A stretch of 64,000 bases of DNA from Paramoeba atlantica (GCA_977017575.1 CDRNVI010000037.1:124001-188000), one strand, 5' to 3'. Shown: positions 4,944 through 61,510, counted from the stretch's first letter. Notes: generated by a model not told the origin, from the letters alone. A program made the numbers and translations.

Positions 4944-6626
4944 ATGCTTGGTCGTATTGACACCCCGGAATATGACACACCCGTTAATAAACCCCCCACA
5001 GCGAAAAGTCACCCCCCTCTAACTTTTCAGCCAAGCGTCCGTTTGAGCTCATTTTTGTTGCATTTTGCTGTTCCCAACACAAAGACTTTGTGCGTTATAG
5101 CATGGAACCAAAACTCTCAAATGCGTGCATCCGATAGATGGATTATCACTTTCTTCACATTTTTCAAGAGACCAATTTCTCACACTTTAACTAATTAAAT
5201 ATTTTCCTCCCATGAGGAAATCAGTTATTTCTGTCCGTTTTTGCTGAGTTTTGTTGCAAACGAGAAATCTCGTTCTCTGTAAAAGCGTCATCAAAAAAAT
5301 GAGTTTTAATTTCTTATCTGTGAAAAGGTTTAAAAACAGCGGGAACGTGCAGATCTCAAAATTTTGAACGAAAAAGTGGTGCCGCAACCCCCCGAAGCCT
5401 CGTTGTACAAAACAAAGAGGGGGGTGACTTATTCGCTGTGGGGGGTTTATAGCTGAAACCCGTGACGCACCACCTGATACATCCCGCGATGCACCTGAAC
5501 CTGATGCTCCCTACGAAAATAAATATTCAGAGTTGTCTTTATGCGGTTTAACTCATCGCGCTCTCACCTTTCTAAAACAATTTTATCCCTTTGAAGAAAT
5601 TTTTGCGAGCTTTCTTTTTTTGCGGTGTGGGGGTAGCTACGACATTGTATCAGAACTCATATCCTTGAAATTCGGAACCGGTTGGTCTGAACGTTCTTGT
5701 TCTGACAAGATACCCGCGTTTTTTAAAAAACTGCATTCCGATATGAAGGATACATGGCTTTGTTTGGATTCTGATATTTTGCACCATGAATCAAACGCAG
5801 TTCTTCCTTTTTGGGATAAGGACATAAAGGTGGTGATGGACACAGTGCCACTGTACGTTGATAGCTTGCCTCACTGCTATCAACCCAAATATGCTACACA
5901 CGTCGTGAAAGCGCTCGTAGCATCTACAATATCTGGGTATGTTTGCTTCACAGCAGACACATTGTACTGTGGAGCCTCATCCGACGCCGTTATTCAGGAC
6001 TGTAGTGGTATTCTGGATTTTCTGGCACACAATCGTGTTCGCGCTCTTGCTGACGGGGGATTTTACGATGGTCTTACTGATAGATTAATAGTACCCCATT
6101 CTAAAGACAAATTTGGTGTTCGAAGCGCCCAAAATCTAAGTCTATGCAGAAACATCATGATTCAGAAGCAGAGGGTAAAATGTGCTTCAATGAAAAGTTG
6201 GCTCATTTTAGATCGCGAGTCGAACACATTTTTTCTCGTTCGTGCTGTGGCAAATGGCTGGCTTTTAAGCAGTGGACTCGTAGTCCAGATTTTCTTTACT
6301 ATGCTTTTTCGCGCGCTCTCATGGTTCATAACATGGAAGTGTTTCATAAATATGGACCTCAAGGAAGATGTCCACCTCTTACCCCTGAGAAAGTGGAAGC
6401 AGTTAAAAAGAAGATAATAGAACACAAAGGACAATCTTCCAGATATGGAGTATCTGACAGTTCTACTATCACAGGTCCGATGGACAAATACACGTATCCT
6501 AAAAATCTTGATGCGTATGTTTTTTTCGTGAACAACAATCCCCCCACCAGCACTCAACCAATAACCCCCTATGATCATACACTCTACGCTCATATACAGT
6601 TACCCCTCCTCACTATACTTAGCTAG
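4944..6626 (+). pseudogene. PIF/Harbinger-type (DDE_Tnp_4-like) transposase, interrupted by a MITE and one frameshift
   Basis: Motifs VVMDTVP, YQPKYATHVVK, GASSD, ALADGGF, FNEKLAHFRSRVEHIF. Removing 4990-5447 plus one TA restores ...TPVNIAETRD... in frame from ATG 4944. Frameshift near 6120. Confidence 0.85.
4990..5447. mobile_element. Tc1/mariner-derived MITE, 458 bp
   Basis: TIR AACCCCCCACAGCGAA(A/T)AGTCACCCC, with TA TSD at 4988-89 and 5448-49. The ends resemble the Tc1 element at 10377-11268. Confidence 0.85.
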
Positions 6627-12752: not shown

Positions 12753-13117
12753 ATTTCGGCCATTTGTCCATATCAATGAATCAGTTGTTTTTTTCTAGGA
12801 ATAAATTCCGTTCGTTTACCAAGTAAATCCAAAAACTCGTAAACGATATGGCATATTTTCTTTAGCGTGATTTATTAGTATTTCATTGCTCTGCCTTCCG
12901 TGTCTTATCTCAGTACAATGCACAAATGTAGATGAACTTTTATGTGCGAAAGGATGATTTGCAAACGCATTTTGTATTGCTCTGACACAAAGACAAATAC
13001 CCTTGGAAGGGTTAGTGCACATCTTCCACACGTGTAGTCGCTAGTCGGGTCCTTGGTGCGACATCCGTCGTCGCGGAGTGCGCCGATGATATCGGCTATC
13101 GCATCAAGGGCTGTATA

Positions 13118-14292
13118 CAGGGGGGGGCCACGAAAACTGACTAGCTTCGCATTTTAGCCTCGTGAGGATCTCAATCAAATTGAGATCAGGAGATTTCGAA
13201 GGCCAGTCAATAATTTTAATTCCTTCCAGCTTACCTATTCTCCGGGCTGCCCCGTGGCCTGGCGCATTGTCAAGGACAACAGCAGCCCCCGGCCGCCGAT
13301 GCATCCAGTTAAAAAACCTATTTCGCTTCTTCATTGTTCTCAGAAAAACTTCGTTTGTTACGGTTTCATTCTGGGAAAACTCGTGGAAACACGCATCGGG
13401 TACTTCCCAACGCAGACTGGTTGCCATGAATACATGCACTCCCTTCCCCCCGTACCACCTATCCATTTCTACTGGTGTTTCCTTGGGGGGGTCAGTGATT
13501 TTTGCAAGATATGTGATTTTTTTCCCATGTGAACCACATCGGAAAGTCTTCTCGTCACACCATACCACACGGGACAGCTGATCTGGACTCCATCCATCGA
13601 AGTAATCAGCAAGTTGTAATCGGGCAGCCTTGTGCCCAGCAGTTAAGAAAGGTTTGTGTGACATAGTCTTAATGACGTATCCCATCCTTTTCAAACTCCG
13701 TTTTACGATGTTCAGACTACAAGGATAAAGTGTCTTGTCCACTCTCTTGTGTACCCATTTAAACCCCGGACACCCGAATGGCGTGTCTTTCTCATCATCA
13801 ACAAGGGTACAGAGCATAGCACGGAATTCCTCCGTATCAACGGCATTATCGCGCGAGTAGCTCGCACGTGCCACGTCACCTGACTCATCAAAACGTGTCT
13901 TGTACCGATAGACAGAGCTCTCAGAACAGTTCATCATTCGTGCCGTGTCTTCAATACTTGTACCACGATGTCTTTCGTGTGCGCAAACAATGCGTATGGA
14001 ATACGAAGACTGCTCTGGGGACAATTGGCGACGGTTTAATCTATGCCGCTTGCCCATAGTGAAGAAAAAAGAAGAGAAAACCAACTTTTTTACTATTTTT
14101 TATGCTTTTTGCAAAATAAATCGTCTTAAATTTCAGTATTTTCGAAATGCAAAATATCAGGTTTATACAAACGAGTTCTAAATAGCGTAGACACGATATT
14201 CAGAACGAGTTTTCTCGTTTGCAACAAAAATTAGCTCAAACGGCCTCACGAGGCTAAAATGCGAAGCTAGTCAGTTTTCGTGGCCCCCCCTG
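13118..14292 (-). mobile_element. Tc1-like element, deletion derivative of 56130-57690
   Basis: TIR CAGGGGGGG(G)CCACGAAAACTGACTAGC with TA TSD. The ORF is nearly identical to 56338..57450 up to SPDLNLIE, then deleted into the far TIR. Confidence 0.95.
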
Positions 14293-20678: not shown

Positions 20679-23364
20679 TGCAGAGGAATGGTGGTTTATT
20701 CTTTGCAGACTTTAAATCCCGTTTTTACTTTAACACAACATTAGGTTTCTGTAAGTAAATATATTTCAATGGGACGTCTAAAAGAAATATTTATTAGTAT
20801 TGTGAAAGTAATTGAATTCGGCTTTATGCTTGTAGAGCAACCTTGTAGAATAGATCACTTTATTCGGAGAATCAGATACTTATTTTTCTTCTAACTCGGT
20901 ATGTAGTGTGGAGTAGAAAATGAACAAATTCTCGTAAAATGCTTTTTTCCTGAATTCCATTTTCATTTTAGAAAAATGTTTTACATAAATTGGTAAATAA
21001 TGTTTTTTTGCGAAATTTTGAAGATGTTACCTTAATGTTTTCCGACGTTTTCTTTTTATGGTACCGTGGACGTCCTGCGTATGGTATCCTTGATACGCAA
21101 CAAAACTCTTTTCTTTGATTCACAACGTAAACGGCGATACTCGCCGAGGTTTACATAACCTTTCCAGCAATCGCTGGACAACAGCCAAGTGGGAGAGAAT
21201 GAAAGCATGTTTCATTTTCAGTGTTTCGAGGTCGCGGCGCTTCGCCAGCTTCCAACGGGTAAGACCCATTTTCCGCCCCTCTTTCTCAACTAAATGTCGC
21301 GAACCACGAACCCCGCTGTCGTTGACGACGACCTCGGTTATGTTTTTGCTTACGTATGAATCAGGGAATACGTGTGATCAAAATTTCGCCCCTGATCAGC
21401 CTCCACTCTAAGTTGGGGTAGCGCCGTTTATTTTGAAACTTGCTGTGATGATACGATCTGAGAAGCCTGATCAAATGCAGCCTCCGAGGTGCAGAAAGTT
21501 GTCGCTTACGATCTTTCGTCCAATGCCACGGTTTATGCAAACCTGCCCGGTACACGAATGGTTCGCAATGTCAGCCCACACTAAGAGAAGCATGCTAGGG
21601 GTCAACAAAATGCGGATCGAAAAGTGTGGGAGAAAACTGCTGACGTGCATTCGGCAAAATTTCCGATCAGCAGGTTATCGGTGCACACAAAGTCGCATCC
21701 GATCATTCCCCGAGATGTCAACCATGAACTGGTTCCTTTGATCAAGGTATTCGGGAATGGTAAAGAGACCATGTGCCTTCATCCATTTCTCCGCATCTTT
21801 ACCTTGTGTAATAACAACAACGCTTCCCCAAAGTCTCACGCATGCGTACCGCGGACACCCTCTTCAAACAGGCTAAATCTCAAGATTTCGCCACGTACGG
21901 CGTTGTGTTGCAACAGGTTCAACGGGACGCTCCTGAATCACACCACGCTCATTATCATCCCGCTGTTGAGCTGTATATTCGATTGCCGCAAGAAACCGCG
22001 CAAACAACCTTTACACACCCTGAAAAAACAAATCTTCGTCCTCATGATGCATAAAAGGCAAAATTTGCAAGAAAATGCCTGACGCCAACAAGAGAATCAA
22101 TTCCAGTTGTGTGCTTTAGGATATGTACAGTGGTGATCATCGTCTTTTACCCCCCCCCTACAGGTCTTGTATTTTCTTCCTTACTCGCGTCTCCGGAACC
22201 GCTGTTTCCCCTTCTTCTTTGGCGCCACTTTTCTCATTTTTTTCAGGGCGGAGTAACGGGAAGCAATTTCCAGTAGAAGCTTTCCGCTTATTTTTTTTTC
22301 ATCGCATTTATTTTCTTGGATTAGTGCGACGTTGTCCAGCTTTTCCGTGTCCGGGATAGTTTCGCCAATGGCCGTTAGTGTCGCCTGTATAAAGTGCGTA
22401 TCGTTATCCCAACTTGAATGCAGAGCTTTAAACAGAGGCGTCCACTTTCGTTTTTCTAAGATCTTCAGTATGACGTTAGTTTTTCAGGACTTGATTTTCT
22501 CCTTCGATAGAGTTCATAACAAAAGCGTCCGTTACGGAGTCTGACATTGCAATTTCTACGTAATACAAAAGTGCGTCAAAAGCTTGTAGGGCAAGCGGCG
22601 CGAAACAAAATCGGTCCTTCGTTGTTGTTTTTTTAATATTCCTATACCTCGTAATATTCCTATACTCTTAAGTACCCTCTTAATATTCCTACCAGGAGTA
22701 TTAACCCGAACAGTGGTTTAGTAGTAATATTCTTCAAATATTTACCATCATGCTACTTCCATTTCACCTTTCCGATATTGAACAGCACACGAAAGGACAA
22801 CAAACGCAAACAAACGATATAAATTTAGAACCAAAAGCACGTGACAAGGGACTAAGTTTTCGTCCTAGTAAGGTACGTGGAGCGAACTTACCACAGGAAT
22901 ATGAACTCGCACGATTGCTCGGAGACAATGAGAATTTGCCTACCACTTGGAGTACGTCAACGCCCGCGTGTGAATGGAAAGGCACCCATTGCAATACGGA
23001 CGGATACGTCACAGGGCTTAATTGGGATTCTTTCAGTCTTACAGGCACTCTCCGATGGGATTGGCTACCTCGGTCAGTAGTCTTGTGTAATGTGATGAGA
23101 AATAAACTCACAGGACACATACATACTGAAAAATTGCCACCGCAACTTAGGTACTTGCTCTTATCCGTCAATAGATTTACGAATCAGGGAGATCTTACTT
23201 GCTTGCCTCTCTCACTGGAAGATTTTGTACTGGATGAAAATCACTGCCACGGAAATGTGGATTTGACACATTTGTCTCCCCGCTTGTCTAAGCTAAGCCT
23301 CCGCAGTAACTTTTTTTCTGGCGAAGTCAATCTCACTGGCTTGCCGGCAAGCTTGACATACCTT

Positions 23365-26300
23365 GTCAGGTACCTTGTTGTACCTTGTTGATTTATTTTC
23401 CCCTACTTTTACGACCCTTCATGACCTCGCCACATGCCAGAAGTGGGGAAATCTCACAGGCGTTGCAGGACTCTCATAAGAGACTAGGCAACGTAACTAG
23501 CCGATCCGCCACCTCTCTGACAGGTGCTGAACGCGAGGCCAAGGAACATGCAGCTCAACATGCAAACTCCTACCGAGTCAGCTCCAAAGCTCCTATGAGA
23601 GGTTCACTGAAAACAAACACTGAAAAGAAGGAAACCGCAATAAATACGACCCGGCGATGTAAACATACTTGTAAGGAGAAAACAAAATGCGGCCATCCCT
23701 GCTGCAAGACTGCGCCGAATCCGCCGTCCACTCAGCCCCTTAACATTTCACAATGCAAGCATCCCTGCAAAGACAAGAGTCTGTGCGGCCACCCATGTTG
23801 TAAACGACATCTTCTTCCTACCTGTGTTCCCGAAGATAGTACCACACATGTATCCCAAGGGAATACTGTTACCGATGTAACGAGGAGGACGGAAACAAAC
23901 ACAATGTCCTCTGAAGCCCCATCATCTGAAGGAGTAAAGGATGTACCTGAACCTATCGCCCCGTGCAAACATATCTGCAAGGATAAGGCGAATTGCGGGC
24001 ACCCCTGTTGTAAACGTCACCTCCACACCACTTGTACGAGCGCCGGTAGTGCACCTAGACTAGATCCACAAAGCAGTACGCGCGACAATGGGAGTCAAAA
24101 TCTGGCAGGAGACTCTGGGGGCTTTATGGTGAAAGTACTGCGCCACTTGACCAAGCCCATATTTCAATGTGCGGGCAAACCCCAAACTGCGCAGAACTCC
24201 TCGAACACGGAAGTGTTTTCACCCAGCGGCAGATCCACAAGCGAGGGCTCCAACCACTACGAACGCTCAAGGAAACACGTCGAGGGAGAAATGTCGGCAA
24301 AGAGAAAATTGATTGCCCCAGGAATCGCAAGATCAAACAGCGACAACCCTGCTACAACGCATGCCAACAGAGCTGATCAGCGTGAAGCAAGTAAGGTGCC
24401 CACCTTTCGGAAATCCCCTTCTTCTCCTCCGGAAGGAAAACAACATACTATCTCCTCAACAGCTATCAATCTTGCGTATGAATTATGTAAAGGCCTCCTT
24501 GGCATCCCTCCCCCGGAAGCACGAGCGAAACCACCGCCTCTCAGAAAGATGACTCCCAAGACCGTAAACCGAGGGTCCCAACTATCTCCCAAGCGAGAAC
24601 CTCCCGAATTCGCTATAGAAAAGCTGCAGGAAGGACCGACATTGCGCCTCAGCGCTCGACAGCCCGAACCAGAGCCTCAGAACCCATACAATCTACCATG
24701 TAAACATCCCTGTAAGGACAAAACCACGTGTGGCCACCTTTGCTGCAAAAGAGGGCTTACCCCTGGCATCACAACATCGTCACCCGCACGTATCTCTTCC
24801 TCTGATACCGAAAAGCACCCCCCAGACCGGATAACTGATGAACCATATCGCGACCATCCCAGCAGCACGCCCGAGCACGACGCAGGGGTGGACACTTCCG
24901 ACAACTCCAAAGCAGAGAAAGTCCCGTACCTCCCTGCCCCTTTATCGCCGCCACAGAATCTTTCGATAGTGCCGGAGTCCTGGAACGTCTCGTTCACGCC
25001 TAGTCCCACACGCCGCGGCGTAGAGAAACTACTTATTAATCGTATAAAGTCACCCCACCATACCGACGACTCAGAAGGACTCTTGACAGAACCACCGTTC
25101 CCTCTCTGCACTGCGGACGACGAAGTTCCGGAATGGGTATTCGAGAAGGTCCCTCACGACGTGCCTTCTGGGAATTCGGGGGTCCCTGTAGAAAGACGTC
25201 GCTCGACAGAGAAAGGGAAACAATGCCTACATTTTATACAATCCCGATCAAAGCCTCTGAAACTTCGCCTAGCAAGTGCCCAAGAATGGTTATATTTTCC
25301 GGACGTACGAGCTGCCTGCGAAAGTCAAATCACACGCAGCAGGATTAGCTCCCTGCAGGGAGCGCAGGCAGCCATTTCGAAGGCGCTGAACTCTGGCAAC
25401 CCCACGCACGACATCATAGTAAGAGGATGTTCCGTAGAAGAACTGATGGACCATGGGGCGTGCGATTTCATTACAATTCATAAAGTCGGAAGCCCGGACA
25501 AGTCTTCGCGCCACTCCAGTTGGGTATCTCTGTACCAGGATGCAGCCCTAAAACTTTCAGATTACTATTCCTCTCCGGGTACTCTCAGTAAAGCCGTTCT
25601 TAAGAGACTAAACGGCTCCGAAATTCCCGGGCTTGCAGATTATGTGATAACCCTACATCGACACACACCCATCGACGAAACTCCGCCGGTCTTAGAAGCT
25701 ATTCCGGAGCTTCCAGCATATCGCATAGCAGACCCACCCAGTCGTGTACCCTCTTTGCAATCCTTTGCACAACCCTGCCGCCACACCTGCCGCGACAAAC
25801 TCGGGTGTGCTCATCGTTGCTGTAAAGTCTTCGGTCCCGCTGCTCCTCCAACTGCAGGTTCCACTGCCGCCGAGACCAGCTCTGCCCAGGAATCCAAAGT
25901 ACCTCGCTCGGCGGTTCCACCAGACCTGCAGGAGTATAAAGAACAGGATCTCGATTACCTACTCCGAACAGCCAGGTACATCCAAGGGGGAAAGATATGT
26001 ATCAACTTAACGGACGCACAGTGGCACGACGTTGAGACCAAGGCTCTCAAAAGGTGTGCATTACTCACTCCTGAACAAGACATAGATTCCGCCGTTAGGA
26101 ACGCCGAACTCCTGAGCTCCATACTATCTGTCTCTACCTACGAGGTTGCTCGCGACGTGAATCCCACGAAAGGCTTTTTAATCCGCACAAAGAAAGGTCA
26201 CGCAAAGACCCGATGCAGACCCTTGGAAAGCGAAAAAATAGCCTCGTCCTTCTCCCGGCACCTAAAAGAACTGCAGACAAAACTACGCTATACACATGGA

Positions 26301-28994
26301 AAGGCAGACAGGAACGCCTTAAAACGAACGATCAAGGAAACCAAAAAAGGTGAAAGGGTTTATCATGCGGAGGCCACCGCACAGCGGCAAACACTCGAAC
26401 AACGCCGGGCACTGAAACGCTTTAACAGAAACCCATGGACCGCCGCTAGCGAAACATTGGACAAACCTATCGGTCTTGAAGCCCCAGCCTCCTATCCTAC
26501 ATGCGATGTGCACAGCGTGGAAAAGCACTTTGGTGATACACTTTCTGCTCCTTCAGAGGAATACCACATTCCTCCGTCTGACTCGCTTGGGACCCGTCCT
26601 CTTGTCGACATGTCATGGGAAGAGCTGACCCCGACCGAAATATCCGACGCTCTAATCTCGAAAAGGAATGGCAGTGCCCCAGGTCAAGACACCATCACAT
26701 ATACCATCCTAAAACGGTGTCACAGCGTACACTCACACATCGCTACAGTCTTCAACGCGTTGCTCAAGTATCGCACTTGCCCACCTTCCTGGAAATGCTC
26801 TGTTACCCGCCTAATTCATAAAAATGGAGCTCACGATCAACCCCAAAACTGGCGCCCCATCAGTCTCATCAGTGTTCTAGCTAAGCTTCTCCATTCGATC
26901 ATAAGTCGCAAAATAAACCGCCATCTGGTCGAGGCAGCAGTAATTGATCCATCAATCCAAAAGGGTTTCCTACCGGCCATCAACGGGACACTGGAACACA
27001 CTCAGACGCTGGATGCAATCTTGCAGCACTACAGAAAGAACAAGCTCCAATACTGCTTAGCCCAACTGGACCTATCCAACGCATTCGGTTCAGTCCCACA
27101 CAATGTTATATTTGAGGCGATGCAATGGGCCAAGATCTCCCCGACTCTCCTCGGGTACATCAGTAGTTTATATAACGGAGCGTCTACGCAAATAAAGTGT
27201 TATGAAGGTCTCTCCTCTACAATTCCTGTGCAACGTGGGGTACTCCAAGGCGACACCCTCTCCCCGTCTATATTCCTTATCGTCATGGAAGTAGTACTGC
27301 GTTATATGACACTTAACTTTCCCGCGTACGGACTCGATCTGCCAGGCAATGCGAAATGCTTTATAAAGGCCTACGCTGACGATCTCACTGTCCTCACCAG
27401 CAACCCGAAGGAGTCACAAATCGCACTTGGAGCCCTATCCTCAATCCTCCGCAAAATAGGTTTATCTATAAACGTGAAAAAGAGTAGGGTACAATGCATG
27501 GCCGTGCGACCGGACGATGAACACCCAGGTTACATGACACGCCGTCCACAAATTCTGGTCAATCACATTCCCATTCCCCAAATCTGTGATGCAGGTAGCA
27601 CCTTTCTGGGCATGACCATCGCCCCTGGAGCACAACAGTCCCGTGCGCTGTTCATGAAGCTACGTCCTCTCATTAATTCATGGCTCAGAAATATCGATAA
27701 GAGCGCCCACGACCTCCCTTCGCGACTATGGATATATCAGCATGCCATTATCTCCCGCTTGCGCTTCTCGCTTACGATCCACCCGTGCATCACTATGAAC
27801 TTTGTCCTCCGACTCCAGAAACTCTGTACCAACTTCCTGCGGCGTTGGATTAACGTGGCGCGTGGCTCTAGTCCCGAAGCAATTTATTCATCGCGCGGCT
27901 GGGGACTGAGGAGCCTGTCGCAACTGTGGCATGAATGTACTGCAGACCTTATGTGCCAGTTAAAGAAATCCAAAGATCCGGCTGCCGCAGCTGTGCTTCG
28001 GAACAAAATACGGGAAGAAGAGGAGAGACGCTTGAAAGGACAAATACGGCCCGCAACTCACATAACGCACTGCTTGAACGACCGATCTCGCGCCAGGAAA
28101 ACTCTCATTGACCTGAACGAGGAGCGTATGATTAACGCTCTGCGACGCCGCACCACGGTTGCCATACAGTGGTGGGACACGAACACGGAGGAAGATCAGG
28201 CGAAAGATTTTGCAGCTGCCATTAACGGCCTTAGGAGCACTTCACTGAGCAGATTCGCTACACATGTGATGGTCCAAGCCCCACTTCCTACCCGGACCAT
28301 GCTCAGAACATGGGGGAAGAATGGTGCAAATAGTGTGTCTTGCCGTATCTGCAACTCAGCACCCGAAACCTTAAGGCACCTGCTCTCAGGTTGCAGGACA
28401 TCCTTAGACCAAGGACGCTACACGTATCGACATGACAGAGTGTTGAGCGTCCTTGCGAACGCGATCGTCGGCTCCCCCAACACCTCCTGGGCCTCATTCG
28501 ACCTCGAGGGCCTCCGTAACCTCCCAAGTTGGTGGGCAGACCTAGAAACCACTCTGCGTCCAGATGGCCTGGTCAGGCTTCACGATGGAACTGAATTTAT
28601 CGTTGAACTGACCGTACCCTGGGAAGACAACATCGCGGAGGCACACTGCCGCAAAACGGAAAAATATCAGAATATATTGCATCGCCGCAGGATGGATCAC
28701 CCGAACACACATCTGCTGTGTATGGAGGTGGGTGTAAGAGGATTGCCGGCTTCCTCTCTTCGGCAGGTAGCCCGCCTTTTTGGGAGTGACAAAGGGCTGT
28801 CCACGGAATGCCAACTTGAAGCCATACGCGAAGCAATTCGTAGTAGCTTTGTTATTTGGCTAAACCGGGAATCACCCGACTGGAAAGGGGGCGGCTAGGC
28901 TAGTAAAACAGCCTATGCGGGGTCGTCGTATGCGACCGTAGCATAGGTAGAAATTTACCTCTGCAGATCTAAATATGATTCTGCATTGAATAAA
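23365..28994 (+). mobile_element. Full-length RLE-type (HERO-like) non-LTR retrotransposon, 5630 bp
   Basis: Single long ORF, 56-nt 5' leader, and 96-nt hairpin-rich 3' UTR ending TGAATAAA. Boundaries are set by rejoining the LRR gene. Confidence 0.92.
23421..28898 (+). CDS. Polyprotein: 5 Cys/His fingers + reverse transcriptase + CCHC + restriction-like endonuclease (1825 aa from first ATG)
   Basis: RT motifs WRPISL, LDLSNAFGSVPH, GVLQGDTLSP, AYADD. CRICNSAPETLRHLLSGC, GRYTYRHDRVL, RPDG...ELTVPWE...RKTEKY, EVGVRG. No stops or frameshifts. Confidence 0.95.
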   Translation: MTSPHARSGEISQALQDSHKRLGNVTSRSATSLTGAEREAKEHAAQHANSYRVSSKAPMRGSLKTNTEKKETAINTTRRCKHTCKEKTKCGHPCCKTAPNPPSTQPLNISQCKHPCKDKSLCGHPCCKRHLLPTCVPEDSTTHVSQGNTVTDVTRRTETNTMSSEAPSSEGVKDVPEPIAPCKHICKDKANCGHPCCKRHLHTTCTSAGSAPRLDPQSSTRDNGSQNLAGDSGGFMVKVLRHLTKPIFQCAGKPQTAQNSSNTEVFSPSGRSTSEGSNHYERSRKHVEGEMSAKRKLIAPGIARSNSDNPATTHANRADQREASKVPTFRKSPSSPPEGKQHTISSTAINLAYELCKGLLGIPPPEARAKPPPLRKMTPKTVNRGSQLSPKREPPEFAIEKLQEGPTLRLSARQPEPEPQNPYNLPCKHPCKDKTTCGHLCCKRGLTPGITTSSPARISSSDTEKHPPDRITDEPYRDHPSSTPEHDAGVDTSDNSKAEKVPYLPAPLSPPQNLSIVPESWNVSFTPSPTRRGVEKLLINRIKSPHHTDDSEGLLTEPPFPLCTADDEVPEWVFEKVPHDVPSGNSGVPVERRRSTEKGKQCLHFIQSRSKPLKLRLASAQEWLYFPDVRAACESQITRSRISSLQGAQAAISKALNSGNPTHDIIVRGCSVEELMDHGACDFITIHKVGSPDKSSRHSSWVSLYQDAALKLSDYYSSPGTLSKAVLKRLNGSEIPGLADYVITLHRHTPIDETPPVLEAIPELPAYRIADPPSRVPSLQSFAQPCRHTCRDKLGCAHRCCKVFGPAAPPTAGSTAAETSSAQESKVPRSAVPPDLQEYKEQDLDYLLRTARYIQGGKICINLTDAQWHDVETKALKRCALLTPEQDIDSAVRNAELLSSILSVSTYEVARDVNPTKGFLIRTKKGHAKTRCRPLESEKIASSFSRHLKELQTKLRYTHGKADRNALKRTIKETKKGERVYHAEATAQRQTLEQRRALKRFNRNPWTAASETLDKPIGLEAPASYPTCDVHSVEKHFGDTLSAPSEEYHIPPSDSLGTRPLVDMSWEELTPTEISDALISKRNGSAPGQDTITYTILKRCHSVHSHIATVFNALLKYRTCPPSWKCSVTRLIHKNGAHDQPQNWRPISLISVLAKLLHSIISRKINRHLVEAAVIDPSIQKGFLPAINGTLEHTQTLDAILQHYRKNKLQYCLAQLDLSNAFGSVPHNVIFEAMQWAKISPTLLGYISSLYNGASTQIKCYEGLSSTIPVQRGVLQGDTLSPSIFLIVMEVVLRYMTLNFPAYGLDLPGNAKCFIKAYADDLTVLTSNPKESQIALGALSSILRKIGLSINVKKSRVQCMAVRPDDEHPGYMTRRPQILVNHIPIPQICDAGSTFLGMTIAPGAQQSRALFMKLRPLINSWLRNIDKSAHDLPSRLWIYQHAIISRLRFSLTIHPCITMNFVLRLQKLCTNFLRRWINVARGSSPEAIYSSRGWGLRSLSQLWHECTADLMCQLKKSKDPAAAAVLRNKIREEEERRLKGQIRPATHITHCLNDRSRARKTLIDLNEERMINALRRRTTVAIQWWDTNTEEDQAKDFAAAINGLRSTSLSRFATHVMVQAPLPTRTMLRTWGKNGANSVSCRICNSAPETLRHLLSGCRTSLDQGRYTYRHDRVLSVLANAIVGSPNTSWASFDLEGLRNLPSWWADLETTLRPDGLVRLHDGTEFIVELTVPWEDNIAEAHCRKTEKYQNILHRRRMDHPNTHLLCMEVGVRGLPASSLRQVARLFGSDKGLSTECQLEAIREAIRSSFVIWLNRESPDWKGGG

Positions 28995-29395
28995 CACCTG
29001 TCGGGTAATAAATTTACAGGATCGCTCGAGTTGCAACATTTGCCACCTTCCTTAACGAAATTTTGTTGCCAAAACAATTGTTTCTCCGGATTCGTTGAAT
29101 TCGGTCGGCTTCCTTGGAAATTAGATTCCCTGCGGATCTCCGACAACGCTGAACTCTATGGGGAAATACCTAAATCTCTTCTCTTGAACACGGATGTTCG
29201 CTTTGCGCATACCAAAGTACGTTTGAAGAATCTGTGAAGTATATCAGCTGAAAGGAACACGTCTGAACAAAATTTACCACTTATATGAGTGTCAAATATC
29301 AATGGTAGATACAGTGTTTGATACAGGGTTCGAAAAACAAGATTTGTTTTTTCAAACAAGAGTTGAGCCAAATCAGTAATGTATTTATTCATTTA

Positions 29396-34418: not shown

Positions 34419-36175
34419 ATGGCCCCACCACTTCTATTCTTTAACGCGAGCCAAGTGACTCTATCCTCACCGTTGCCACACGAAACTGTTGCCGTACTGC
34501 CCTTCCCCGATGATACTTCAGCTACGCCATCCACCGCATTAATATTGAATGCATCTAACCAGCTTGCTGAGCAGCCGCGGAAGGTTCGGGTGGATCTTAC
34601 CATACAGCAAAAAAAAACAACCTATGTGCTAGTATAGATGCCGGCAAGTCTGTAAGCGTGGCCGCCCGAGATTACAAGGTCGAGGTAAGCACGGTACATA
34701 GAGTTTATCGGAAAAAAGAAGATTGGTATAAATTTACTCAACTTGGCTTCGGGAAATTGTTTCAGTATCATCCCCCCCGAGCAAAGAAAGAATTATATGA
34801 AAAAGGGTTGACGCAACTGCTTTTGCTACGCGGGTCTCTTTCGGCAGTCACGAAACCGACAATGTTGGGGTACTTTGCTGAAATTTCAGAGCACTTCTGT
34901 TCCCTTACCGACAAAGGAAAAGAAAAATTTTGGATTCGTTTTTGCACCTTCGCCAATATTTCGCGACGAAGAGTCAATGGAGCAACCCAAATGGTCCCAA
35001 AAGACATGGACGAGCGTATAGAAGCCTTTTTGAATATGATAGCTCTGCGAAATTGTGATCGCGGAGGATACGCTGTAATTGTAACAGGGGACGAGACCTG
35101 TGTTGTGTGGGAGCCCGTCAATGAAATCACATACGACACTGAAGGGACAAAGCGTGTAAAGGTTTTAACTACAGGTAAGGAGAAGAAGACACTGACTGCG
35201 TGGTTTTGGGGCCGCTCTGCTACGAACCAACGGCATGCAGAAAGCACGTGGGAGCATAAGGTGTTTCCTCCGCACTTAATTTGGGAAGCCCATTCAGATT
35301 CTGGGAAGGTTTCCAAAGAGGTGCTCCGGGCGGCAGAAAAGTACAATTGTACGGCAACAACGACAACAAGCGAGTGGAACACAGGAGGGTCATTTAAAAA
35401 ATGGGCTGAAGCGGAATTCTTTGACAGAATGAAGTATCCTCCGCGGAAGACACTTATTATTTTGGATCTGTACGCTGCTCATCGGACAGCGGAATTATTA
35501 TTGTTCTTTCGTGAGAGAGAAATCGATGTTCAATTCGTTCCAGGAGGTTGCACTTCCAAAGGACAGCTCATGGATATGGCCATCAACCAGCCTTTTAAAA
35601 AGTACTACAAGGAATGTTTTGCCTCCTGGCGTGCGTCGACGCATCATGAAATTGTCCGGCCAACGCGAAGTCTTATAACAAAATTTGCCACCCAGGCTCT
35701 GGCAAAAGTGAATTCAGAAGAATACGAAATCGAATTTAATAAGTTGCTTGTTCCAGCACTTACCAAAAATCTCGCACAGATTCCCATAGAATCCAGAGCC
35801 GAGCTCAGCCTCTCCTCAAGCGTTATCACGGAATCGATGGTGGATGCATCAGCCATCGCTTCACGCGTATCACAACTGAGCATTGTCGAGGAATCTCTTG
35901 AACCAAATCAGGTCCCTCGTCTGCCAACGCGCGTTCCTGTAAAAAATCGAATTAGTCCCACAATCGCAGCGAAAGCCATGAAGTCCGCGATAGAGTCAGC
36001 GCGTAACAGGAACTCAGCGCTTAACGCAACCCCAGTACAGGAGTGTTGTTATTGCACGCGAGTGAATTTAACTCTACGGGAGTGTAGTGAACCTGGGTGT
36101 TTAACGAAATTTCATCACATGTGTGCAATTGAAGAAAAGGGGGAAGAGAATGACAATTTCTGCGCAAAGCATTAA
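34419..36175 (+). mobile_element. pogo-like transposase (HTH + DDE_1, DD35D) with C-terminal PHD-like finger; one frameshift at A9 34609-34617
   Basis: GDET, IILDLYAAH, VPGGCTSKGQLMD. N-terminal HTH across the shift (KVRVDLTIQQK|NNLCASIDAGKSVSVAARDYKVEVSTVHR). C-terminus CYC...CSEPGC...HHMC...CAKH. Confidence 0.88.
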
Positions 36176-37680: not shown

Positions 37681-39203
37681 AGAGGAGGATGTATAGCGCA
37701 AATGGAACGGCAAGTGTGTCCCGAAGGACACGGAGCCCATGGGCCTCCCAGCACGAATGCTGGGGCGGTGGTACCCCGAAGGGTACGGAGCCCATGGGCC
37801 TCGTTACAGAGGATGAATATATAAATGCAACGGCAAGTGTGTCCCGAAGGACACGGAGCCCATGGGCCTCCCAGCACGAATGCTGGGGCGGTGGTACCCC
37901 GAAGGGTACGGAGCCCATGGGCCTCATTACAGAGGATGAATATATAAATGCAACGGCAAGTGTGTCCCGAAGGACACGGAGCCCATGGGCCTCCCAGCAC
38001 GAATGCTGGGGCGGTGGTACCCCGAAGGGTACGGAGCCCATGGGCCTCGTTACAGAGGATGAATATATAAATGCAACGGCAAGTGTGTCCCGAAGGACAC
38101 GGAGCCCATGGGCCTCCCAGCACGAATGCTGGGGCGGTGGTACCCCGAAGGGTACGGAGCCCATGGGCCTCATTACAGAGGATGAATATATAAATGCAAC
38201 GGCAAGTGTGTCCCGAAGGACACGGAGCCCATGGGCCTCCCAGCACGAATGCTGGGGCGGTGGTACCCCGAAGGGTACGGAGCCCATGGGCCTCGTTACA
38301 GAGGATGAATATATAAATGCAACGGCAAGTGTGTCCCGAAGGACACGGAGCCCATGGGCCTCCCAGCACGAATGCTGGGGCGGTGGTACCCCGAAGGGTA
38401 CGGAGCCCATGGGCCTCGTTACAGAGGATGAATATATAAATGCAACGGCAAGTGTGCCCCGAAGGGTACGGAGCCCATGGGCCTCGTTACAGAGGATGAA
38501 TATATAAATGCAACGGCAAGTGTGTCCCGAAGGACACGGAGCCCATGGGCCTCCCAGCACGAATGCTGGGGCGGTGGTATCCCGAAGGGTACGGAGCCCA
38601 TGGGCCTCGTTACAGAGGATGAATATATAAATGCAACGGCAAGTGTGTCCCGAAGGACACGGAGCCCATGGGCCTCCCAGCACGAATGCTGGGGCGGTGG
38701 TACCCCGAAGGGTACGGAGCCCATGGGCCTCGTTACAGAGGATGAATATATAAATGCAACGGCAAGTGTGCCCCGAAGGGTACGGAGCCCATGGGCCTCG
38801 TTACAGAGGATGAATATATAAATGCAACGGCAAGTGTGTCCCGAAGGACACGGAGCCCATGGGCCTCCCAGCACGAATGCTGGGGCGGTGGTATCCCGAA
38901 GGGTACGGAGCCCATGGGCCTCGTTACAGAGGATGAATATATAAATGCAACGGCAAGTGTGTCCCGAAGGACACGGAGCCCATGGGCCTCCCAGCACGAA
39001 TGCTGGGGCGGTGGTACCCCGAAGGGTACGGAGCCCATGGGCCTCGTTACAGAGGATGAATATATAAATGCAACGGCAAGTGTGCCCCGAAGGGTACGGA
39101 GCCCATGGGCCTCGTTACAGAGGATGTATAAATGCAACGGCAAGTGTGCCCCGAAGGACACGGAGCCCATGGGCCTCCCAGCACGAATGCTGGGGCGGTG
39201 GTA
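37681..39203. repeat. Tandem array of 123-bp units with interspersed 68-bp deletion units
   Basis: Unit AATGCAACGGCAAGTGTGTCCCGAAGGACACGGAGCCCATGGGCCTCCCAGCACGAATGCTGGGGCGGTGGTACCCCGAAGGGTACGGAGCCCATGGGCCTCGTTACAGAGGATGAATATATA. Confidence 0.97.
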
Positions 39204-46930: not shown

Positions 46931-47202
46931 ACTGAGAAGAGAAAACGTGTATGGTTCCGGGCCTAAGAGCATCGTAGACCAGAAAGGAAGCAGTCCCACA
47001 CCGAAAGAAAAATTTCGTATATTATAAAAAAAGTCACAAAAAATTATTTTGGGCCCCAAAAATCGTTATGTCAACTGTCCCCCCGGTATTTACTCCCAAC
47101 TATTTTCTTGGAGCTTTGACGTGGTTAAATCACGTGTTAAAAAACTGTGGTTCAGTAGTAGATAAAAAACTCTTTCCTTGCACATTTCTTATTTATCTAT
47201 CC

Positions 47203-48541
47203 ATGAGGTTTTTGTATCGTGCGACAGATTCGGTGTCGGGCGTCTCACGTCCTGCCAAAGTCGGCGCACTTTCTTTACCAACAGAGTACCAGTTGATGCA
47301 ACTTGTAAATGGCATTGAAAATCCTCATGCTACGTGGAGCTCAGGTACACCCGCATGTGAATGGCGTGGTGTAAAATGTAATGAAGCAGGAAAGGTGGTT
47401 GATATTCGTTGGGATTCTATGGATCTCCGTGGGGTTTTTAATTGTGATCATTTATCCAGCGAATTAAAAGTGCTTATTGTTCATCGAAACGAACTGTCGG
47501 GAGAAGTTTCTTTTAATAATTTACCCGCTGAGTTGACCGCTCTTTACCTTGTTGGTACTTTTTTTTCCTAGCTCATCTTTTCTCTCCCGGAAACGGGCAT
47601 ATTTTTACACTGTCAATGCCCGTTTCCGGATGGCGCTAGGAGAGGAACTGTCCCTCTTGTCGCAAAGTAGGGGTGCGCCTCCCTTCCCTCATCTCCCAGC
47701 ACCCCGCTCGGAACACGGTTCCGAGTCCCCATGCGCTGCAGGACCCTACTACGGGACCACGCGGCGTGCCTTCACTATCCGGCGACACCGGTACTTCTGC
47801 GCGTAGGAGGCTTCCATATACCGGAAGTCTCCCACACGGCGAGCAAACACGTTGTATGCGTGTTCTAGAGGATGTTCTATGCACCTCTCTTGCTCACCAG
47901 CCGTGGCGGATTCTGTGGGACCCCGATACCCATGATGCTTCATGAACCATGACTCCATTTGCCAGCATGCATCCATGGCCCTGACCATGTTGTATCATGA
48001 ACCATGGAAGTCATTTGTAGCATGTACGATGGGAATATCATCCGCGTCCCACAAATCCGTATATTTTTCCTGGCGCACTGCGCTTACAAAACATCTCGGG
48101 ACATCTTATCCCGATGAGGCCTTCTCTTTTCGCTTTCCTGGGGAGGATATCCCGCGCTTTTCCCTGTGTTGCCTCGGAAGGCGAAAAGGTCCAGCAGGGA
48201 ACGTTGATTGCGCTTACCCCTGCTCGACCTAATTATCTCTACAGGTACTGCCCTGTATGAACAAACAACTTTGCATGAACCGATTCACCGGCCACCCTGA
48301 TTTTCGTCATTTGCCGCAAAATTTGTGTGAACTTCACATTGCCAATAATTATTTTGAAGGTCATGTAGTTCTAGATTCTCTTCCATCATCGCTAAATCTT
48401 TTGTATCTATCGTGGAATATGGAGCTAGAAGGAAAGCTGGTCGTGGGAGGGAATTTGGAATATTTAAGATATGACGTTCGCGGTACGAAAATTTCAGTGA
48501 GTGATGGTATCTTGTGGAACGATGAAGGTAAGTGGAAGTAA
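47203..48541 (+). pseudogene. LRR gene disrupted by a 721-bp insertion (halves 47203-47544 and 48266-48541)
   Basis: Joining gives LPAELTAL|QLCMNRFTGHPDFRH, an exact 23-aa repeat, in frame, 205 aa. Confidence 0.9.
47545..48265 (+). mobile_element. Non-autonomous, structured SINE-like retroelement, 721 bp
   Basis: Starts TACCTTGTTG (as in the HERO-like 5' end) and ends in the hairpin TACAGG/CCTGTA + TGAACAAA (as in the HERO-like 3' end). No coding signal. The alternative boundary 47551-48271 gives the same length. Confidence 0.8.
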
Positions 48542-56129: not shown

Positions 56130-57690
56130 CAGGGGGGGCCATGAAAACTGACTAGCTTCGCATTTTAGCCTCGTGAGGCCGTTTGAGCTAATTTTTGTTG
56201 CAAACGAGAGATCTCGTTCTGAATATCGTGTCTACGCTATTTAGAACTCGTTTGTATAAACCTGATATTTTGCATTTCGAAAATACTGAAATTTAAGACG
56301 ATTTATTTTGCAAAAAGCATAAAAAATAGTAAAAAAGTTGGTTTTCTCTTCTTTTTTCTTCACTATGGGCAAGCGGCATAGATTAAACCGTCGCCAATTG
56401 TCCCCAGAGCAGTCTTCGTATTCCATACGCATTGTTTGCGCACACGAAAGACATCGTGGTACAAGTATTGAAGACACGGCACGAATGATGAACTGTTCTG
56501 AGAGCTCTGTCTATCGGTACAAGGCACGTTTTGATGAGTCAGGTGACGTGGCACGTGCGAGCTACTCGCGCGATAATGCCGTTGATACGGAGGAATTCCG
56601 TGCTATGCTCTGTACCCTTGTTGATGATGAGAAAGACACGCCATTCGGGTGTCCGGGGTTTAAATGGGTACACAAGAGAGTGGACAAGACACTTTATCCT
56701 TGTAGTCTGAACATCGTAAAACGGAGTTTGAAAAGGATGGGATACGTCATTAAGACTATGTCACACAAACCTTTCTTAACTGCTGGGCACAAGGCTGCCC
56801 GATTACAACTTGTTGATTACTTCGATGGATGGAGTCCAGATCAGCTGTCCCGTGTGGTATGGTGTGACGAGAAGACTTTCCGATGTGGTTCACATGGGAA
56901 AAAAATCACATATCTTGCAAAAATCACTGACCCCCCCAAGGAAACACCAGTAGAAATGGATAGGTGGTACGGGGGGAAGGGAGTGCATGTATTCATGGCA
57001 ACCAGTCTGCGTTGGGAAGTACCCGATGCGTGTTTCCACGAGTTTTCCCAGAATGAAACCGTAACAAACGAAGTTTTTCTGAGAACAATGAAGAAGCGAA
57101 ATGGGTTTTTTAACTGGATGCATCGGCGGCCGGGGGCTGCTGTTGTCCTTGACAATGCGCCAGGGCACGGGGCAGCCCGGAGAATAGGTAAGCTGGAAGG
57201 AATTAAAATTATTGACTGGCCTTCGAAATCTCCTGATCTCAATTTGATTGAGAATTTGTGGAGTATGATGGATAAGTACATCCACACCCATCTTCGTCCG
57301 AAAAATCGAACGGAATTGCAAGCTGCTATTCCTAAGGCGAAGGACTACGTGTTGGCAGAATGTCACGAGGCGTATGTGAACACGTTACAGAGTCCTCCCA
57401 CACGCCTCGCTACTCTACGTGAGCGTGGAGGTGGGAATACTGGATATTAAGACTTAGTTTCTACCGCGAAAGGCCAAAAATTACTATTTTGCGCTCTTTT
57501 TTCAATTTGCAAAATCTCAAAAATTTCAGTTTTTCTACCCATGGGAAAGGCTTGCTTTCATCAGTTTTTGTACTCTAAATAGCGTAGACACGATATTCAG
57601 AACGAGATCTCTCGTTTGCAACAAAAATTAGCTCAAACGGCCTCACGAGGCTAAAATGCGAAGCTAGTCAGTTTTCGTGCCCCCCCCCTG
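56130..57690 (+). mobile_element. Full-length Tc1-like element, 1561 bp, with TIRs of about 115 bp
   Basis: Long near-perfect TIRs, TA TSD, intact ORF. Confidence 0.96.
56365..57450 (+). CDS. Tc1-like transposase, DD32E, 361 aa
   Basis: WCDEKTF, VLDNAPGH, WPSKSPDLNLIENLW, N-terminal HTH. Confidence 0.93.
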   Translation: MGKRHRLNRRQLSPEQSSYSIRIVCAHERHRGTSIEDTARMMNCSESSVYRYKARFDESGDVARASYSRDNAVDTEEFRAMLCTLVDDEKDTPFGCPGFKWVHKRVDKTLYPCSLNIVKRSLKRMGYVIKTMSHKPFLTAGHKAARLQLVDYFDGWSPDQLSRVVWCDEKTFRCGSHGKKITYLAKITDPPKETPVEMDRWYGGKGVHVFMATSLRWEVPDACFHEFSQNETVTNEVFLRTMKKRNGFFNWMHRRPGAAVVLDNAPGHGAARRIGKLEGIKIIDWPSKSPDLNLIENLWSMMDKYIHTHLRPKNRTELQAAIPKAKDYVLAECHEAYVNTLQSPPTRLATLRERGGGNTGY

Positions 57691-60357: not shown

Positions 60358-61510
60358 TCAATAACCAGAATGTCCTCCATTGTTTTGCAGTACTTTTCGA
60401 AGCCTATTCGGAACCGAATCAATGGAGTTTAACACTTTTTGTTTCTCAGGGGATCGTTTTAGAAAGGAAAAAGCTTTTTTAATGGCTTGTGCAAGGGTGG
60501 CGTGATCGTGAGGCTTAATTTTGTTTTTTATAATTTTATCCATTTGTCCCCAAACATTTTCAATAGGATTTAGATCAGGCGAGTTTGGCGGCCAAGATAG
60601 AAATTTTATATTATTTCTTCTTAATTCGGCCTTCGCCATATTGTGGGTCGTGGCGTTGTCCATTTGGACCGTGACATCCCTCAAATGATTTTTGAGGTAA
60701 GCTAAAAAGCCGTTCGGTTTTTGAAACGCCTCAAGAATCACTTCCCCAGAGACCTTGTGTGTGTTATCATAACTTGTGCGGTCATTAGGCTCAAAAACAT
60801 GCAAAAAAAAGCCATGCTGAACGCTTATTCCCATCCAGGCCATCACGCCCTTTCCCCCATACCATCTCCGGTTTCTCCGGCGAGGTTTTCTTGGACCCCC
60901 TTTTTTTGTAATGTAAAACTGAGAACCGTGGACCCCACAGGTAAACAACTTCTCATCTGTCCAAATAATTTTATTCAAATCATCTTTTGGCCATAAAAGC
61001 AATTCATTTGCCAGCCGCAGGCGCTGCAATTTGTGATCTTCTGTTAGGTCACAATTAGGCCCTTTGGCCAATCTGCCATAATTTTTTGCTCTTAAAATAG
61101 ACTTAACCTTACTTAAGGAACATTCATATCCCATATTTAAAACCTGTTCATGTACCCAACTATACGTCAGGCACCCATCTTCTTTTTCATTTTCTTCATC
61201 CACAATGTCTTTTAAAAGTGAGGTGAAACGTCGTGAAGGTTTCTTTTTACCCGGCGCTTTTTAAGGTGAAAGATCTTCACCTTCTCTCCATTTTTTTATG
61301 AAACGGCTTATTGTACGGCGAGCGCGTCCAAAGTTTTTCGCGAGCCGATGAACACTTATACCATTCTTGTATTGTTTTATTATTTCGAGACGCTCTGAAA
61401 GAGACACTTCTATAGTGCCTTTGTGCGATATTGGGGGGGTAGTTTTGCCTATTATCTTTCCACCCTTCTACATATTCACCACTTTTAGGGTTAGTCGGTC
61501 TTGTATTCAT
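60358..61510 (-). pseudogene. Second DD32E Tc1-like transposase, N-terminus disabled
   Basis: IWTDEKLF, QMDNATTH, WPPNSPDLNPIENVW. The upstream HTH (SLSERLEIIKQYKNG...ARRTISRF) is separated by a TAA near 61260. Confidence 0.88.

Follow-up and report, generated by a model that had tools for sequence, protein, structure and literature searches.

Among retrotransposons that lack long terminal repeats (non-LTR retrotransposons) and encode a restriction-like endonuclease (RLE), the CRE, R2, R4 and NeSL clades are mainly target-specific and HERO is mainly non-specific. The targets listed for site-specific non-LTR elements are rRNA genes, spliced leader (SL) exons, tRNA and snRNA genes, transposons, microsatellites and telomeres (PMC4640811). 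In kinetoplastids, other retroelements have a fixed site in a protein-coding multigene family, namely ingi/RIME in the RHS genes of T. brucei (PMC7563717) and TcTREZO in the MASP pseudogenes of T. cruzi (PMC5814959); at these hot spots, many family members become pseudogenes and autonomous elements share the site with SINE-like partners (PMC7563717, PMC5814959). The present analysis concerns a 64,000-nucleotide stretch from Paramoeba atlantica (GCA_977017575.1, CDRNVI010000037.1:124001-188000; hereafter "the window", always at its full length), in which a 5.6-kb insertion (23366-28998) interrupts, in sense orientation, a + strand gene made of leucine-rich repeats (LRRs). This element belongs to a family that we call A and, very probably, to an R2-like clade whose members are headed by a piece of the host SL and repeatedly use one codon position of the LRR unit in sense orientation, the window copy included. 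A first, sequence-only reading of the stretch had described an intact RLE retrotransposon lying in sense in an LRR gene and devoid of target-site duplication (TSD). The open reading frame (ORF), the reverse transcriptase (RT), the CCHC knuckle, the endonuclease and the matches to a hidden Markov model (HMM) of the LRR unit all agree with this description. The features of the locus are:

22750-23365, + strand: upstream half of the interrupted LRR gene, with an N-terminal cap and LRR units (ORF, translation and sense-frame LRR HMM matches)
23366-23391, + strand: 5′ junction, made of a TCAG filler, an SL tail GTACCTTGTTG (SL nt 28-38; 23370-23380), a partial copy TACCTTGTTG (23381-23390) and an A
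23392-23420, + strand: pyrimidine-rich 5′ untranslated region (UTR), common to all full-length family A copies
23421-28898, + strand: intact ORF of 1825 residues plus stop codon (ORF call and translation)
23658-25823, + strand: region carrying five Cys/His knuckles, C-x-H-x-C-x5-C-x-H-x-C-C, at 23658-23705, 23754-23801, 23964-24011, 24699-24746 and 25776-25823 (motif scan)
26814-27497, + strand: RT domain (Pfam RVT_1, E 2e-30; aligned to the R2Bm RT)
28341-28394, + strand: CCHC zinc knuckle 5′ of the endonuclease (motif scan, residue 1641; weak Pfam zf-RVT match)
28557-28667, + strand: RLE core RPD...ELT...K.EKY (motif conserved with animal RLE elements, RPD...ELT at residue 1713)
28899-28997, + strand: 3′ UTR devoid of poly(A), in which a long stem-loop is followed by a short hairpin at the end (28961-28985) and finally by TGAATAAACAC
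28998, + strand: single C, absent from the empty allele (read contigs)
28999-29237, + strand: downstream part of the interrupted LRR gene, read in frame as far as the stop codon (translation, HMM and read contigs)

The two halves of the gene join in frame into perfect 23-residue LRR units. The upstream half ends with the Leu(N-5) codon CTT followed by a G, the first base of the N-4 codon (codons being counted back from the Asn of the unit). The 5′ junction thus lies 1 nt into the N-4 codon, after G 23365, i.e. 1 nt later than it had been drawn, and the 3′ junction lies at the Leu(N-3) codon. The search for empty alleles in reads that had been proposed was fruitful: contigs of public read runs were compared with positions 23150-29140 of the window (5,991 letters), and in two of them, one from run X3 (1,095 nt) and one from run X2, position 23365 is followed by ATT alone and then by 28999. 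The filled 5′ junction is spanned by a contig of run X1, and X1 and X3 come from the same sample. The empty site reads ...TTG ACA TAC CTT GAT TTG TCG GGT AAT..., i.e. L-T-Y-L-D-L-S-G-N; it had no match in the assembly itself. The earlier statement that excision restores a perfect 23-residue repeat is therefore right as to the frame but not as to the original residue, which is D and not H. The presence of this empty allele shows that the window insertion is polymorphic within the sequenced material and that 2-3 bp of target were removed, with no TSD. In R2, the second cut is made 2 bp upstream of the first one, and the spacing of the junctions agrees with this geometry. Base 28998 was either added without a template or reflects a T/C allele difference in the Leu(N-3) codon.

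The window carries a cluster of ten small LRR genes, all on the + strand, and two of them are broken by insertions. The second one (47068-48541) is hit at the same codon position as the first, as previously claimed; its insert turned out to be a 721-bp non-coding element of another family, B, that has many copies in the genome:

47068-47544, + strand: upstream half of the second interrupted LRR gene
47545-48265, + strand: 721-bp non-autonomous family B element, with the SL-tail head TACCTTGTTG, no ORF, and a 3′ hairpin followed by ATGAACAAA, then CAA
48266-48541, + strand: downstream half of the second LRR gene, whose first three bases (CAA) are probably element-derived

In the genome (45.7 Mb, 248 contigs), family A has six copies of full length, whose ends (600 bp compared on each side) are 98-100% identical, as well as 5′-truncated copies, with 10 independent 3′ junctions in total. 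Family B provides ~26 independent 3′ junctions, its copies being ~87-100% identical over the stretches compared. A third family, C, shares 68% amino acid identity with A over the RT and endonuclease, has 14 independent 3′ junctions and ends with ...GCCCTGTATAGATATAA. The 3′ ends of all three families fold into a long stem-loop and a short hairpin and finish with an A-rich tail that is not a poly(A), and their terminal 2-3 bases are family-specific (CAC in A; CAA, CA or AC in B subfamilies). The window element ends with ...AATAAACAC, without any A-run, and its CAC (28995-28997) is the element's own 3′ end, since CAC is found in 8 of the 10 independent family A copies and TAC in one more. The target motif initially proposed (TTGAC-n4-CTT before the junction, CA(C/A)CT after it) has therefore to be abandoned: its CA(C/A) is the end of the element and TTGAC is absent from the other hit sites. 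None of the examined flanks resembles rDNA; they correspond to LRR genes, other repeats or unique DNA. SL-headed elements are also found inside members of their own group, one in a family-A-like 5′ UTR (C99:193237) and another just past the ORF of a relative (L084, at 6241). Numerous loci are present on two contigs each, with the same flanks (C28/C37, C23/C73, C16/C29, C19/C43 and others), and the assembly seems to hold haplotig-like duplicates, so that copy counts need collapsing.

The flanks were scanned with an HMM built from 47 LRR units of the window. Among the ~51 independent 3′ junctions of families A, B and C, all the flanks that are LRR lie on the sense strand. The first Asn codon is found 11-13 nt after the common end of the family at 12 junctions, and at 16 and 23 nt at two more, LRR junctions amounting to one of 10 in family A, eight of 26 in B and five of 14 in C. 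When the family-specific terminal bases are left aside, the 3′ junction is located 9-10 nt before the Asn codon, and the sole antisense LRR near a 3′ junction begins 63 nt off. On the other side, the 98 listed 5′ junctions of SL-headed elements correspond to ~75 independent sites, ~70 of which could be judged; 29 of these clearly, and ~6 more probably, have a flank of the form ...L-P-x-x-L-x-x-L ending 0-2 nt past the last Leu, which is Leu(N-5). In the subset of 5′ loci checked with the HMM, the last Asn codon and the junction are 56-63 nt apart (57-59 nt expected), filler cases excepted; one element adjoins an antisense LRR gene.

The background was estimated with the pattern AAY-n3-YTN-n4-GG-n19-YTNCC, which retrieves 36 of 48 window units (75% sensitivity) with no background. 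Genome-wide, it detects 6,791 sites compared to 154 for the reversed control, corresponding to ~8,850 units and ~1.3% of the 45.7 Mb. The probability that a random insertion falls in sense at one register (within 1 nt) is ~2.9e-4, and the binomial tails are 6e-32 for the 3′ set (12 of 51) and 2e-70 for the 5′ set (25 of 70). A very large LRR family, together with a window lying in a cluster of such genes, could give the impression of targeting where elements merely land by chance in abundant genes. However, given the small share of the genome that LRRs represent and the fact that every hit is in sense and deviates by no more than 1-2 nt from a single register, such fortuitous hits are extraordinarily improbable. 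The data thus support one position of the LRR unit as a preferred and orientation-specific target of the A/B/C clade, used far above chance.

A shared register could also result from common descent, if duplication or gene conversion had propagated one old insertion. Loci present in duplicate, with the same flanks, exist (C28/C37 and C23/C73 among others) and LRR genes form tandem clusters. However, once duplicates are collapsed, the LRR flanks of the hit sites are 32-55% identical in register, compared to ~87-100% between the copies of family B and 98-100% between those of family A. Furthermore, three families of elements occupy the site, the length of the SL head, the 5′ truncation and the filler vary from copy to copy, and the window copy has an empty allele. 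The low identity of the flanks, the involvement of three families and the differing heads and fillers indicate that the hit sites are independent, which makes common descent very improbable.

Several points weigh against LRR targeting. First of all, 55-70% of the junctions lie outside LRR units, often in other repeats, and the first 30 bases of these non-LRR flanks share no motif beyond element-derived ends. Only one of the 10 family A insertions is an exact LRR hit and one is a near hit, eight being located elsewhere. The hit sites have no conserved bases beyond the codon consensus, the LRR motif being degenerate in DNA. The support from a relative with 56% identity (L084), which lies at the same register of an LRR unit in another assembly (ERZ24900291), is not clearly independent, as this assembly may come from the same or a very close organism. 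It should also be emphasized that the 5′ junctions were classified by eye, that all counts depend on the collapsing of duplicated (haplotig-like) loci by flank identity, and that none of the public RNA runs contained the stretch. The preference is thus partial, concerning ~25-45% of the insertions, and falls short of a strict specificity in which nearly all copies would lie at the target. It also appears weaker in family A than in family C. Taken as a whole, the initial claim of LRR-gene targeting holds as an enrichment in register and in sense at the level of the clade, not as the strict use of the motif then proposed. Likewise, the flank survey that had been suggested gave LRR 3′ hits that are all in sense and exceed the LRR share of the genome, with most junctions outside LRRs.

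These figures raise the question of whether family A is practically non-specific, only C and its hitch-hiker targeting LRRs and the window copy reflecting a residual preference or luck. Eight of the 10 independent 3′ flanks of family A are indeed unrelated to LRRs, further A-type 3′ ends that were examined gave no new LRR hit, and family B has a 3′ hairpin similar to that of C, not to that of A. However, the probability that at least one of 10 random insertions falls at the exact site in sense is ~0.003, the register is missed by a few bases in another A copy (C99), which is in sense within an LRR gene, and A and C are close over the RT and endonuclease (68% identity, see above). We therefore consider a practically non-specific family A as rather unlikely.

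The enrichment could be real and yet involve no recognition of sequence by the protein, if it resulted from DNA structure, from a replication or transcription intermediate, from a host nick or from selective retention at this register. The lack of any base-specific motif beyond the LRR codon consensus, the lack of anything shared by the non-LRR sites and the lack of a recognition domain assigned by Pfam or ESM Atlas would fit such an explanation. On the other hand, a strict orientation and a register held within 1-2 nt are what a site-specific, asymmetric R2-type nuclease would give, and selection has no cause to retain one register since an insertion at any register breaks the gene. Furthermore, relatives found in (TG)n or beside (TA)n, although one copy of each was seen, suggest a specificity proper to each family. 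An enrichment without recognition is thus unlikely, and the repeated use of the LRR codon position by an R2-like, SL-headed clade remains the reading that we retain.

Other sites were also found. A conserved ~110-bp unit, reading ...CAGATCTCAAAATTTTRCACGAYAA..GGTGC.ATAA before the point of insertion and CCCTAGCCCCC.TC.TGCGAAAAATAAGGGTGGGTGCC... after it, is also targeted repeatedly, copies of A, B and C interrupting it at an identical point in differing genomic contexts (L002/L012 on C4, L062 on C59, L028 on C45 and L033 on C54); it has no Rfam match. The relatives mentioned above (L081 and L080 from ENA ERZ24900291), which are SL-headed and have 41-50% amino acid identity, lie one inside (TG)n and one followed by (TA)n, one copy being seen of each. 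This suggests that target choice differs between sister families, microsatellite targets like those of Togen of fish being possible.

The window element contains a single uninterrupted reading frame (open from 23385 to 28898, with an ATG at 23421 and a stop codon at 28896-28898). Its RT is of the non-LTR type, as indicated by Pfam (RVT_1) and by structure comparison, in which R2Bm (8gh6) is the best solved-structure match of the protein (E 1e-36, aligned from the RT to the endonuclease region) and the L1 ORF2 RT also matches the RT. The Pfam scan of the window protein revealed no domain of the apurinic/apyrimidinic endonuclease (APE) type, and the whole protein has no Pfam match to a C2H2 zinc finger or a Myb domain. 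Neither Pfam nor ESM Atlas recognizes a known domain in the N-terminal 800 residues or gives a match in the knuckle region, and a relaxed Pfam scan (E up to 10) of two N-terminal stretches (residues ~71-460 and 694-1040) found nothing. The knuckle motif is also present in the relatives P0001-P0006, in varying number. Because the number and sequence of the knuckles vary among families with different apparent targets, the array is a candidate reader of the target, its five knuckles being candidate DNA-recognition modules. Apart from sequences of the protist, the closest database proteins come from animal RLE elements that bear no family name and share the CCHC and RPD..ELT motifs, and the exact family A protein is not on record in public assemblies. 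The fold of the 3′ UTR (z -4.8) recurs in families B and C and in the L080 relative, and an Rfam scan of the window gave nothing. Judging from its sequence, the window element is a young, intact R2-like (RLE-type) non-LTR retrotransposon of a kinetoplastid-type protist. Moreover, the 3′ ends are constant within each family, some copies are 5′-truncated and the 5′ junctions are variable and contain filler; these are hallmarks of target-primed reverse transcription, by which the elements would integrate.

The sequence-only reading had overlooked that the copies start with a spliced leader. In this organism, the SL RNA genes form a tandem array of AACTTTAACGATAAAGATACAGTTTCTGTACCTTGTTG followed by GTATGAG, interspersed with 5S rRNA genes; the SL exon, AACTTT...CCTTGTTG, is 38 nt long and precedes this GTATGAG. 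PMC3795323 tabulates its core, CAGTTTCTGTAC, as that of euglenozoan/kinetoplastid SLs, and the 38-nt variant ending with CCTTGTTG had no match in the literature searched. At one such locus (L045/L046, C3:780747-782222), the tandem unit is 1,454 bp long, with SL RNA and 5S rRNA genes in alternation, and Rfam recognized only the 5S rRNA in the SL array; an SL-5S alternation in bodonid kinetoplastids is the subject of a title cited in PMC2621209.

The copies of families A and B and of related elements all begin with a 3′ part, variable in length, of the host SL exon. The SL piece is fused to the 5′ UTR at the 3′ end of the exon or within a few bases of it, as after trans-splicing: the last G of the exon directly abuts the element sequence in family B and in related SINE-like (short interspersed) elements, and 0-11 extra bases can be found between the exon end and the 5′ UTR in family A. 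The 26 bases that open the window copy (23366-23391) lie outside the element body, other copies diverging before 23392; this head consists of TCAG, SL nt 28-38, SL nt 29-38 again and an A. The SL pieces of some copies extend back to SL nt 2-9, which indicates that the leader is not simply inherited from truncated DNA copies. Since every copy is SL-headed, the template of the element is a trans-spliced mRNA carrying the host spliced leader. Two other origins of the heads were considered and rejected. An insertion into SL genes, as for CRE-like elements, does not apply because true SL genes continue with GTATGAG in the SL-5S array and the elements continue with their own UTR. A target that mimics the SL tail (the TACCTTG microhomology of the window copy) does not apply either, as it is absent from the other hit sites.

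About 60% of the independent SL-headed copies begin at SL nt 10-11 (flank, then (G)ATAAAGATACAG). This corresponds to the 11/12 position in the 39-nt trypanosome numbering, the insertion point of SLACS and CZAR in SL genes (PMC5814959), and may be a coincidence, an RT stop or the relic of an SL-specific nuclease. Two or three partial SL pieces can also occur in tandem at 5′ junctions (window 23370-23390; L009, C35:33548; L084, ~2720-2770; C30:150137). At L009, a near-full SL is followed by a piece that begins directly after the leader's own CAG. These "SL stutters" may reflect trans-splicing that was repeated, at an AG within a previous SL copy, or else template jumps.

In the mechanism that we propose, the element protein would recognize LRR-encoded DNA, the endonuclease and the N-terminal Cys/His knuckles being the candidates for this function. 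The antisense strand would be nicked at the N-4/N-3 codon boundary and reverse transcription would be primed on the 3′ hairpin RNA, after which the sense strand would be cut ~2 nt upstream, in a staggered second cut like that of R2. Landing in sense in a dispensable family of ~9,000 units would provide both a safe harbour and read-through transcription, and trans-splicing would turn the read-through RNA into a capped mRNA. More broadly, the protein may read a degenerate, codon-periodic DNA signature of the LRRs, the ~9,000 units would serve as safe harbour and Pol II platform with the SL supplying the cap, and the elements might drive the turnover of the LRR family through pseudogenes and possibly unit recombination. 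We put forward this broader scenario tentatively, with somewhat less than even confidence. Such a role in turnover resembles what has been proposed for RHS and ingi.

If true, a protein-coding repeat motif would for the first time be the natural target of an RLE element, and a repeat motif within protein-coding genes would add a class to the targets listed in PMC4640811. No paper joining RLE elements with leucine-rich repeats was found in a literature coverage that is incomplete and gives no proof of novelty. The earlier impression that no such example had been described agrees with this search as regards RLE elements and LRRs, but is too broad in view of the known retroelement hot spots in protein-coding multigene families. 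The sister families, apparently located on (TG)n, (TA)n or LRR units (the first two seen once each), also bear on the evolution of specificity. Furthermore, the data suggest a promoterless route of expression, with a sense landing in a transcribed gene and an mRNA made by trans-splicing. R2-type proteins are under development for targeted gene insertion, and a relative with a degenerate target and a knuckle array would be a useful comparison. Finally, the elements are a recurrent source of LRR pseudogenes.

Besides these elements, the window is rich in DNA transposons, with three DDE_3 (Tc1/IS630-like) ORFs, two of which are near-identical, one DDE_1 (pogo-like) ORF and one DDE_Tnp_4 (Harbinger-like) ORF:

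13104-14084, − strand: transposase ORF
56338-57450, + strand: transposase ORF
60358-61203, − strand: transposase ORF
34658-36175, + strand: transposase ORF
5533-6417, + strand: transposase ORF

It also contains two long tandem arrays, at 37700-39200 and 62357-64000, made of 123/314-bp and 67/126/319-bp units (78-99% matches), with open frames on both strands.

Compared with known systems, the elements described here are closest to R2. Like R2Bm, the window element encodes in a single ORF an RT, a CCHC knuckle and a C-terminal endonuclease of the PD-(D/E)xK type. R2 is devoid of poly(A), its 3′ UTR is structured, its junctions are precise at the 3′ end and variable at the 5′ end, and a small deletion of the target takes the place of a TSD. 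The elements studied here share these traits and, like R2, would rely on the host transcription of a multicopy target. However, the target of R2 is the 28S rDNA, whereas it is here a codon position of a protein-coding repeat, used with partial specificity. In addition, five knuckles are found in place of N-terminal C2H2/Myb domains, none of which was detected here, and the 5′ end results from SL trans-splicing, whereas that of R2 is made by a ribozyme.

The CRE clade (SLACS, CZAR, CRE1/2) also has kinetoplastid hosts, a single-ORF RLE-type non-LTR organization and a link with the spliced leader. In the SL exon, the insertion point of CRE elements is between nt 11 and 12 (PMC5814959, PMC12278014), a position equivalent to the commonest 5′ end found here, SL nt 10-11. 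However, the SL is here carried on the 5′ end of the element as a copy of a processed RNA, and the copies are dispersed and not located in SL genes. Moreover, CRE elements have a poly(A) tail and a TSD (PMC12278014), which the elements studied here do not have. In NeSL, Utopia, Togen and HERO, the targets are SL exons, U2, tRNA and (TG)n, and the strength of the specificity varies (PMC4640811). The relatives of the window element in (TG)n or beside (TA)n, one copy seen of each, recall this variety; on the basis of the target descriptions, the elements studied here are set apart by their protein-coding motif, since no member with such a target appears in PMC4640811.

With regard to the kinetoplastid hot spots, ingi and L1Tc make TSDs and carry the Pr77 internal promoter. 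They are APE-type elements (PMC12278014), and ingi/RIME and TcTREZO are described neither as RLE elements nor as lying in a repeat motif (PMC7563717, PMC5814959). Furthermore, the RHS site occurs once per gene, whereas the LRR unit occurs several times per gene, and no SL head has been described for ingi, L1Tc, NARTc or TcTREZO. Lastly, in dinoflagellates, SL remnants at the 5′ end of retrogenes prove the retroposition of trans-spliced mRNAs (PMC12014239); host genes are copied there in trans, whereas here it is the retrotransposons and their SINE that carry the spliced leader.

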